NCBI GenBank assembly: GCA_033442325.1
Contig: JAWQFM010000024.1
Coordinates: 504,185-566,493 of the forward strand
DNA: 62,309 nucleotides
DNA from: Salpingoeca rosetta
Taxonomy: Eukaryota > Protista > Choanoflagellata
Direction: 5' to 3'
The notes under the pieces are model-generated. The model ran no database searches. It saw nothing but the letters and a program-made list of their open reading frames with translations, and was not told the DNA's origin. Of the stretch, positions 60,184 through 62,309 are shown piece by piece; the first letter of the stretch is position 1; the number at the start of each line of letters is the position of its first letter. Made by a program: the position numbers and the translations under genes.

Positions 60184-62309
60184 ATGGACCATGCGTGGGG
60201 AGCTGCAATGAGACACCCACATCAACAACAAGCGCACCCACAAGCGATGCAGCAACACAGATGGCGGAGGCGTCGTCACAGGCCTCAGCTGCCTTGCAGC
60301 TCGCGCCTCGCTGACCGCGCTTCTTCAACCTGCACAAGCTGGCGGTTGCCCACATCGCTGCTGTTGTCATTGGTGTTCGTCGTGGTTGTGCTCCTTGCTT
60401 CAAGTATAACAGCATCAGCAACACCAACAGCAGCAGTAGCAGCACAGCAACAGCAACAGCAACAGCAACAGCAGCAGCAACCGCTCATGCTGGACGATGT
60501 AGATTTGCATGTGCTGCAGCCATTGCAGCTGCATGTTGGCCGCGGTCTGCTGTGCGGACTCGCAGGCAACAAACCCCTGCCTTCTTGGATATCCTGCGAT
60601 CCGGAATCAGGCAACTTGTATGCGTTGCCGCCACAACACGCCGTCGGCCAGTACTTTGTCAACGTGACACAGCCCCGCGACGACTCAGATACCAGCATGA
60701 GCAGCAGCAGCAGCCAGCCCCAGCAAGACGTGTTTGGATTGCAGGTCTTGCCAGAGCCGCAGCCGGCACAGTGCGCCGTCTTCACCGTGCGTGCCACCGT
60801 TGACAAGCCTTGGCGGTTCTTTGACACGGGAAGCAAGGTCGCCTTTGCTTCCCACCTCATCGACATTGCCACGGCTGTTGCGCCCTCTGCTTGGTTCACC
60901 GTCACCAACACTGCGCCAGGCCTGCAGCGCTCCTTTTCCCCAAGTCAGTGTGCATGTGTGTGTGTGTGTGTGCATGCGCGCAAGTGTGTTTGTGTGTATA
61001 CATGCGCCATAAGAAAGTGGATGCGTCCATGACCTGCTTTGCGCACCATGCTGCGCAGTTGTTTATAAAACGGCCTTTGAGTCAAGCCGGGCTCACCGCC
61101 ACCACCGCCGCGACTACTGCTGCCGCCGCCGTATCTCTCTCTCTCTCTCTCTCTCTCTCTCTCTCTCTGTGTGTCTCTCTCTCTCTGTCTCTCTCTCTCT
61201 CTCTCTCCCCGCCCCCCTCTCTTGCACCGTCTCACCTTGTCGCTTTCCTTCCTTCATTCCATCACTTCGTTTTGTTGCAGTGTATTGGATGGGCCAATCG
61301 CCCAACAATGCGGCCGTGGACGTGAGCCATTCCACAACCATCGTGGACCTCGCCTTGCCCTGTGGCATGGGCGCAACTGTGCCGCAGGCGCAGGCCATCC
61401 TCGACGCACTCACCCGCGCGCACCATAACCTTGACTTGTTCCAGGTGCGATGTGCACCAAGCAAGCTGCCCCGCTGTGTTGCCTGCAAGATGCAGCCTAC
61501 TTTTTCCTGCCCTGTGCGCTTCCTTTTGCTTGCACGCACACACACACACACACACACTTACACACACATACACACACACACACACACACACACCACCCGC
61601 GTCTCATGATTTACACACTTGCATGTCATCCTGTCTCCCTCCAACTCTCGATAGGGCTTGAGGTACGACATCATCTCGCTTGTGAGCACGGATGTGCAGC
61701 TGCTGCGCCACAAACCAGAGCACAGGGCAGGTGACGCAACACCCACACCCACACCGCAGCTGCAGCCAGACCTGCGCGTGCCAACCACTGGCGCTCGCCT
61801 CCCCCTCAAAGCAGCCCCCATCTCGTCCTCTGCCACCAAGCAACGGCCCCACCAACAAGGCCCTGCCTCATCGTCTGCGGTGTTGGAGCGCACGCTGTTG
61901 GAGGATGCCCTCTTGCAGCGTGCGAGGCGTGCAGACTCAATTGACCTGTCCACGCTGGGCGAAGTCGATGTCGTCTTCATCATCGATGGTTCGGGCAGCA
62001 TGGGCTTTGACAACTTTCAGCGCGCCCTCGAGCTGGCAGCAAACATGGTCGAGGCGCTTCCGATTGGCCCAGACAACTTCATGTACGGTTGTTGAAGACA
62101 CCTGTTCCATGCTTCGTTTATCGCTAAATCCATGTAACTCCACAACCTTTGCATGCATGCACTGGTTTGGTCCACACTCACATCTGCACAAACAAACAAA
62201 CACACACACACACACACACACACACACACACACACACACACACACACACACACACACACGACGACGACGACGACGACGACGACGACGACGACGACGACGA
62301 CGACGACGT
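60184..62309 (+). CDS. Alpha-dystroglycan-like secreted/membrane protein (CADG Ig-like, S6-like N2 domain, TPTP, RARR) followed by a vWA domain; 3' part beyond window
   Basis: Exons 60184-60943, 61281-61444 and 61655-62082 are in frame. A hydrophobic signal LLLSLVFVVVVLLASSITASA precedes CADG PLPSWISCDPESGNLYALP..VGQYFVNVT..DVFGLQV. The vWA start VDVVFIIDGSGSMG..NF carries a DxSxS MIDAS motif. Confidence 0.75.

Follow-up and report, generated by a model that had tools for sequence, protein, structure and literature searches.

A predicted dystroglycan-like membrane protein with a vWA array in the choanoflagellate Salpingoeca rosetta

The locus and its N-terminal head

The stretch of DNA considered here, hereafter the window, comprises 62,309 nucleotides of the choanoflagellate Salpingoeca rosetta (GenBank assembly GCA_033442325.1; 55.4 Mb, 68 contigs) and corresponds to C24:504185-566493, C24 being contig JAWQFM010000024.1; the gene locus lies inside this 1.2-Mb contig. 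At window positions 60184-62309, on the forward strand, three exons separated by canonical GT-AG introns of matching phases encode a spliced product of 429 amino acids (aa), which we read as the N-terminal head of a much larger protein related to animal dystroglycan. In spliced order, the product consists of a basic N-region, a hydrophobic signal sequence, a dystroglycan-type cadherin-like (CADG) Ig-like domain (IG1), a second domain of about 130 aa, the motif DATPTPTPQ, a variable linker of about 55 aa, the site RARR and the start of a von Willebrand factor A (vWA) domain. The features are as follows.

60247-60943, forward strand: exon 1, with start codon, signal sequence, IG1 and the first half of domain 2, ending in phase 1 before GTCAGT
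60184 and 60208, forward strand: alternative in-frame start codons of exon 1, from sequence reading
60346-60420, forward strand: hydrophobic core of a signal peptide or signal anchor (residues 34-58), ending in ASA and preceded by a long basic N-region, from sequence reading
60481-60759, forward strand: IG1 (CADG/He_PIG), with LPSW..D..SG.LYALP...GQYFVNV...VFGLQVLPE, supported by phmmer, hhalign, AlphaFold2 (AF2) and Foldseek
60772-61705, forward strand: domain 2, candidate S6-like domain (residues 176-304), with its starting Cys at 60772, split by introns 60944-61280 and 61445-61654
61281-61444, forward strand: exon 2, middle of domain 2 (YWMGQSPNNA ... DLALPCG ... helix), also kept in the relatives L006 and L009
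61655-62082, forward strand: exon 3, with the final strand of domain 2 (GLRYDIISL), the ATPTP motif, the variable linker, RARR and the start of vWA domain 1, ending in phase 2 before GTACGG
61733-61759, forward strand: DATPTPTPQ (ATPTP at residues 315-319), with ATPTP.P..QP invariant in three species
61919-61930, forward strand: RARR, a furin/kexin-type R-x-R-R site (residues 376-379) directly before vWA domain 1, with RxRR in both relatives
61964-62082, forward strand: N-terminal part of vWA domain 1 (Pfam VWA), with the metal ion-dependent adhesion site (MIDAS) motif DGSGS at 61985-61999
62083-62309, forward strand: first part of intron 3, containing microsatellites of (CA)n and (GAC)n; past the window the gene runs on (sequence reading)

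Long (CA)n, (CT)n and (GAC)n microsatellites occupy 59960-60050, 60950-61000, 61130-61210, 61540-61600 and 62200-62309, that is, the upstream region and all three introns, and they give rise to many spurious open reading frames (ORFs) as well as to about 200 repeat matches in a genome search.

An earlier note on this DNA, made from the letters alone, had described a signal peptide, a CADG domain, a second domain, a GDATPTPTP segment, RARR and a vWA domain; every string it named is present at the place it gave. The same layout is kept in two other organisms. One is represented by a Logan contig of the public run SRR14727191, from an AT-rich genome (L006), and the other by a marine metagenome contig (L009) from the species that also yielded the Tara protein P0001; L009 was the sole locus found in a scan of metagenome contigs and is genomic, with the same introns. 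Both have the same three exons, with identical intron positions and phases, and their products are 39% (L006) and about 60% (L009) identical to that of S. rosetta. Since two other organisms share the exon structure, the phases and a protein of 39-61% identity, the head is, as judged from these sequence comparisons, real and more than a chance pattern.

The IG1 domain is homologous to that of dystroglycan. Indeed, in a phmmer search of the PDB every top match is the IG1 of alpha-dystroglycan (E 4e-4 to 4e-3), and a three-species profile of IG1 aligns by hhalign to the IG1 of 25 animal dystroglycans with a probability of 97.8% (E 8e-13). In parallel, exon 1 alone, which covers IG1 and the first strand-helix-strand of domain 2, was modelled with AF2 at a mean predicted local distance difference test score (pLDDT) of 78.6, reaching about 90 in IG1, and the top nine Foldseek matches of this model are all dystroglycan.

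Beyond domain 2, the segment ATPTP.P..QP is invariant in three species while its flanks vary, and the RxRR site stands right before the vWA domain in the relatives too, as RQRR in L006 and RARR in L009. The earlier note was correct in placing RxRR downstream of TPTP rather than upstream, an order common to L006 and L009. Genes for P-domain proprotein convertases are present in the S. rosetta genome. The vWA adhesion domain that the note saw added to a dystroglycan-like head is borne out by Pfam VWA (E=1.2e-7, 32.6 bits against a cut-off of 23.8) and by the DGSGS MIDAS motif.

The downstream part of the gene

Sequence downstream of the window on the same strand of C24 is referred to as L003 and L004 (L004:4880 being C24:578679). 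The 5,222 bases right after the window (C24:566494-571715, L003:2695-7916) lay outside the sequence analysed and are expected to contain the middle exon of vWA domain 1 together with a large intron or other sequence. Past this 5.2-kb stretch, exons on the same strand are chained by vWA domains split across introns, and a giant single exon, from L003:9952 to L004:5033, encodes more vWA domains, a Ser/Thr/Pro-rich mucin region of about 550 aa, a second Ig-like domain (IG2), an Arg run, a Cys-Pro region, a transmembrane (TM) helix and a tail. Counted from where domains begin and end in the translations, the vWA domains of the whole protein would number about five; four pieces score 32.6, 93.7, 53.4 and 48.9 bits against Pfam VWA, with intact DxSxS MIDAS motifs. 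Each vWA domain follows a Thr/Pro-rich linker whose final residues form a conserved (P)xC(A/D)F motif (L003:9800-9880; L004:820-880, 1650-1710 and 2292). The sequence suggests that the linker-plus-vWA unit was duplicated in tandem.

The region from IG2 to the TM helix, which is single copy in the S. rosetta genome, is homologous to the corresponding part of dystroglycan. Searched by phmmer against all PDB sequences, it finds as its best match the dystroglycan chain 8yt8_O (E=5e-8) in two ordered stretches, one on IG2 and one on the TM helix and its flank, and the TM stretch is also matched on 9c3c_B. A hidden Markov model (HMM) of 25 animal dystroglycans gives 45.8 bits to IG2 (E=5e-16) and 11.4 bits to the TM region. 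A word search over 5.8 billion proteins returned three matches, one of which is an arthropod dystroglycan (Pfam DAG1, He_PIG and a_DG1_N2; E=9.4e-17), and in the ESM Atlas the three clusters nearest to the C-terminal part are all dystroglycan, with a score of 0.90. The AF2 model of IG2 has a pLDDT of about 90, and its best Foldseek matches are 8yt8_O (1e-11), 8uf4 (1e-9) and 9c3c. He_PIG, at 24.4 bits on IG2, is the sole Pfam match of the IG2-TM region.

Between IG2 and the TM helix lies a juxtamembrane module in which Cys-Pro, together with two other columns of the dystroglycan alignment, is invariant. Just before this module, where animal dystroglycans have no convertase site, a polybasic run GRRRRRQ is found at L004:4338-4358. 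This RRRRR run may offer an alternative route to a two-subunit split.

An apparent +1 frameshift just after the TM helix comes from one extra G in a GG run at L004:4880. Reads placed on L004:3700-5500 show this G to be missing in each of two DNA contig sets, in one RNA contig and in a raw RNA read; with three independent read sets lacking the base, the frameshift is a one-nucleotide assembly error. In the corrected frame, the TM helix runs into a basic stop-transfer sequence and then into a proline-rich tail, which scores 9.6 bits against a sub-HMM of the dystroglycan cytoplasmic region, a value reached by 0 of 1000 shuffles; the alignment is collinear and ends on YR.PPxY. The tail is spliced: the RNA contig departs from the genome near L004:5248 and resumes at L004:5577, which fits a GTGAGT...CAG intron at L004:5246-5576. 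The gene is expressed, as raw RNA-seq reads cover the giant exon at low depth. The cytoplasmic domain amounts to about 455 aa and contains PPPY, PPAY and PPDY motifs that are not at the extreme C-terminus. Its last exon (L004:5577-6583) encodes an extension of about 330 aa with poly-Thr, PPDY, poly-Gln and acidic poly-Asp segments and has no Pfam match.

The reach of the dystroglycan likeness

The earlier note had regarded this protein as a possible pre-metazoan relative of dystroglycan, and the C-terminal half supports that view: IG2, the TM helix and the tail all find their counterparts in animal dystroglycan, arranged in the order known from it. Several observations weigh against it, or against parts of it.

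In the second domain of the head the sequence signal is weak. In the 25-dystroglycan HMM, spliced residues 106-325 align to HMM positions 87-308, collinear through to ATPTP, at 20.8 bits, and the three-species profile of IG1 plus domain 2 aligns by hhalign to the dystroglycan N-terminal region with a probability of 97.6% over 177 columns, collinear up to the last S6 strand. Taken by itself, domain 2 does less well. A sub-HMM of S6 only gives 2.3 bits to S. rosetta and 4.1 bits to the relative L006, values each reached by 5 of 1000 shuffles; hhalign of domain 2 against S6 gives a probability of 11% (P=0.0027, 100 collinear columns), with other dystroglycan regions as controls at P 0.11-0.15. 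Alignment of the S6 region by hhalign with two and a half sequences returned nothing and became weakly positive with three species. Searched exon by exon, Pfam a_DG1_N2 (PF18424) finds no match; a genome scan with PF18424 also finds none, but the control of that scan matched nothing anywhere, so that the scan is uninformative. On the other side, strand 1 is preceded by a Cys and followed by an Asp that do not vary across an 18-sequence alignment, and the second Cys of domain 2 (LALPCG versus GC in dystroglycan) is in register in the family-HMM alignment. The two cysteines presumably form the counterpart of the disulfide of the mouse S6-like domain.

The structural comparison points the same way. 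By VIA-align, residues 12-150 of the exon 1 model lie on residues 72-234 of mouse alpha-dystroglycan (Z 7.0, about 125 residues aligned), and dystroglycan entries alone extend past the Ig domain, all others stopping at its end. In particular, the modelled first half of domain 2 superposes on S6 residues 180-234 of mouse alpha-dystroglycan, in an exon 1 model whose input contained dystroglycan rows. The presence of such rows in the AF2 input alignments may have biased the models towards dystroglycan, and the models are therefore support but not independent evidence. Of the S6-like fold that the earlier note had proposed for the second domain, what stands is a weak sequence signal in the right direction and the fit of the first half in the exon 1 model. 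Collectively, these data make it fairly likely that domain 2 is S6-like.

The remaining points against concern single landmarks of animal dystroglycan. An intron within IG1 has been reported as universal in animal dystroglycan genes (Sciandra et al. 2017, PMC5216574) and is absent here: exon 1 encodes IG1 unbroken, and both introns fall in domain 2. Pfam DAG1 (PF05454) finds no match at E<=0.1 on the IG2-TM region and none at E<=0.01 on the right-frame tail. No Gly-Ser motif for self-cleavage (autoproteolysis), as in animal dystroglycan, is evident at the aligned place. Of the parts that the earlier note wanted looked for downstream, a second CADG domain, a TM helix and a PPxY tail are all found, on the same strand and in dystroglycan order; the SEA/NU domain is the weakest of them, consisting of the conserved Cys-Pro and of beta-alpha-beta-beta-alpha-beta elements modelled at low confidence (pLDDT <50). 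In dystroglycan a furin site comes right after S6 and is followed by the T-P-T motif; in the S. rosetta protein both elements are present and conserved but in reverse order. Moreover, Thr-Pro runs recur in every linker of the protein, so that ATPTP may be a plain linker, and the motif alone is weak evidence for O-mannose or matriglycan chemistry. Because the Pfam thresholds are not reached, and because an IG1 intron, an evident Gly-Ser site and the animal-type order of furin site and TPT are all missing, the protein is, on its sequence, best described as a divergent dystroglycan-like variant with a vWA array in a non-animal, and not as a plain member of the family.

Might the likeness be that of a generic choanoflagellate adhesion protein, assembled from common modules (CADG, vWA, mucin, TM helix, proline-rich tail) and resembling dystroglycan by convergence or through widespread domains? 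Exon 1 lends itself to such an explanation. An exhaustive representative profile search with it retrieved mostly giant multi-CADG proteins, matched in the Ig part alone, and added one full-length exon 1 relative (P0011); in the ESM Atlas, alpha-sarcoglycan (0.87, the nearest) and He_PIG clusters rank before dystroglycan, with all scores below 0.9. Furthermore, the other two proteins retrieved in the word search are bacterial He_PIG repeat proteins, both outscoring the arthropod dystroglycan, and neither Pfam DAG1 nor a_DG1_N2 is reached. However, the bacterial matches are confined to the Ig part, whereas five separate modules are collinear with dystroglycan, including parts that are not CADG at all: the TM helix with its flanks, the juxtamembrane Cys-Pro and the cytoplasmic tail. 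The best PDB, Foldseek and Atlas matches of the C-terminal part are, in addition, dystroglycan. An origin from common modules is accordingly improbable.

Still less probable is that two neighbouring genes have been read as one, the first coding for a secreted head with a dystroglycan-like N-terminus and vWA domains, the second for a membrane protein with vWA domains, mucin and a dystroglycan-like C-terminus. The 5.2-kb stretch between exon 3 and the next exon in view is unread, and it is across this stretch that one continuous transcript would have to run. Yet exon 3 stops in the middle of vWA domain 1, and the first exon past the stretch opens with a vWA C-terminal half sharing about 55% identity with what follows exon 3 on the L009 contig; the later exons are all on the same strand and are chained by intron-split vWA domains. 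In L009, the exon after exon 3 and, behind it, a vWA C-terminal half lie on one contig, and that half is orthologous to the first S. rosetta exon past the stretch, which supports the continuity we infer for the gene. An animal origin of the locus, by contamination or recent transfer, would make it silent on pre-metazoan history, but this explanation has nothing in its favour beyond the resemblance to an animal protein and is essentially refuted. Indeed, the locus sits within a 1.2-Mb contig of a genome in which a 42-nucleotide S. rosetta sequence, an intron-containing part of the rpl36a homology arm listed among the oligos of Booth and King (2020, PMC7314544), has one exact match. The locus is also present in S. 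rosetta DNA and RNA runs from at least nine studies; its identity to animal dystroglycans is just about 20-30%, and marine metagenomes contain relatives that carry this vWA fusion. The non-animal origin assumed in the earlier note thus holds, the genome being that of the choanoflagellate S. rosetta.

All in all, with a rough probability of 0.8, the locus is the 5' end of one very large S. rosetta gene, of about 3,000 codons, whose product is a type I membrane protein with full-length homology to animal dystroglycan.

Possible function and comparison with known systems

Such a protein would work as a cell-surface adhesion receptor. Its outer part would bind ligands through the metal sites of the vWA domains and through O-glycans on the mucin and Thr-Pro linkers, while the PPxY tail would couple to intracellular WW-domain proteins. 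The RxRR site may permit shedding of the N-terminal unit, and the IG1-S6 unit may dock a LARGE-type glycosyltransferase encoded in the genome, as in mammals.

The earlier note had also suggested checking the genome for genes of dystroglycan glycosylation, and candidates, called by Pfam family, are present. A LARGE-like gene combines Glyco_transf_8 and Glyco_transf_49 in one 843-aa frame (L010, C10:658113-661940, ORF 1288-3819, minus strand), and three further loci of glycosyltransferase family 49 (GT49) are found on C21, C16 and C9. They are accompanied by two PMT (POMT-like) loci, five GT61 loci and one LicD (fukutin/FKRP-like) gene. Adams and Brancaccio (2015), surveying S. rosetta, M. brevicollis and Capsaspora, detected neither dystroglycan nor any protein resembling it, but they did find POMK, B4GAT1 and LARGE1 there (PMC4582122). 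One proposal that would join these data is that the dystroglycan-matriglycan axis is older than animals: ATPTP, the Thr-Pro linkers or both would be O-mannosylated and extended to a matriglycan-like polymer by a LARGE-like enzyme docked on IG1-S6, and the protein would be the missing substrate of choanoflagellate POMK, B4GAT1 and LARGE as well as a PPxY-coupled receptor for matrix or substrate. We consider this proposal tentative and, as a whole, rather doubtful.

In the literature, dystroglycan counts as one of the adhesion genes that appeared together with animals, and in the searchable literature, subscription-only papers not being covered, we found no report of a choanoflagellate dystroglycan. 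If the whole-length match is true, the origin of the receptor moves before animals, and choanoflagellate POMK, B4GAT1 and LARGE1 acquire a candidate substrate. In S. rosetta, which is tractable by CRISPR (PMC7314544), the function and glycosylation of a dystroglycan of ancestral type would become directly testable. Neither laminin nor dystrophin has been reported in S. rosetta (PMC4582122), and the inserted vWA array suggests a way in which ligands may have been bound when laminin did not yet exist.

Among known systems, the closest is animal dystroglycan (DAG1; PDB 1U2C, 5LLK, 8UF4, 8YT8 and 9C3C), which provides the best sequence and structure matches for IG1, IG2, the TM helix and the tail. 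The N-terminal halves share a signal peptide, IG1, a second domain (alpha/beta in dystroglycan and probably so here) with a conserved Cys pair, ATPTP and a basic convertase site; the C-terminal halves share, in order, mucin, IG2, a Cys-Pro juxtamembrane module, the TM helix, a basic stop-transfer sequence and a tail with PPxY near YR.PPxY. The S. rosetta protein differs in carrying about five vWA domains between the N-terminal unit and the mucin, in having RxRR after ATPTP, whereas in animals it comes before, and in showing no visible Gly-Ser motif but RRRRR between IG2 and the juxtamembrane module instead. It also has a cytoplasmic extension of about 330 aa, which leaves the PPxY motifs away from the C-terminus; its gene lacks the IG1 intron, and its scores fall below the Pfam DAG1 and a_DG1_N2 thresholds.

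The other two systems each share one side of the protein. vWA and integrin I-domain proteins (collagen VI, matrilins, integrin alpha I-domains) likewise have repeated vWA domains with an intact DxSxS MIDAS, but none of them has a dystroglycan-type IG1, IG2, TM helix or tail. Alpha- and epsilon-sarcoglycan are type I membrane proteins with a dystroglycan-type cadherin-like domain, and they are the nearest Atlas cluster for exon 1 and the 13th for the C-terminal part. In contrast to the S. rosetta protein, they have one CADG domain and are without mucin, vWA domains and a PPxY tail, and the TM helix and tail of the S. rosetta protein match those of dystroglycan instead.

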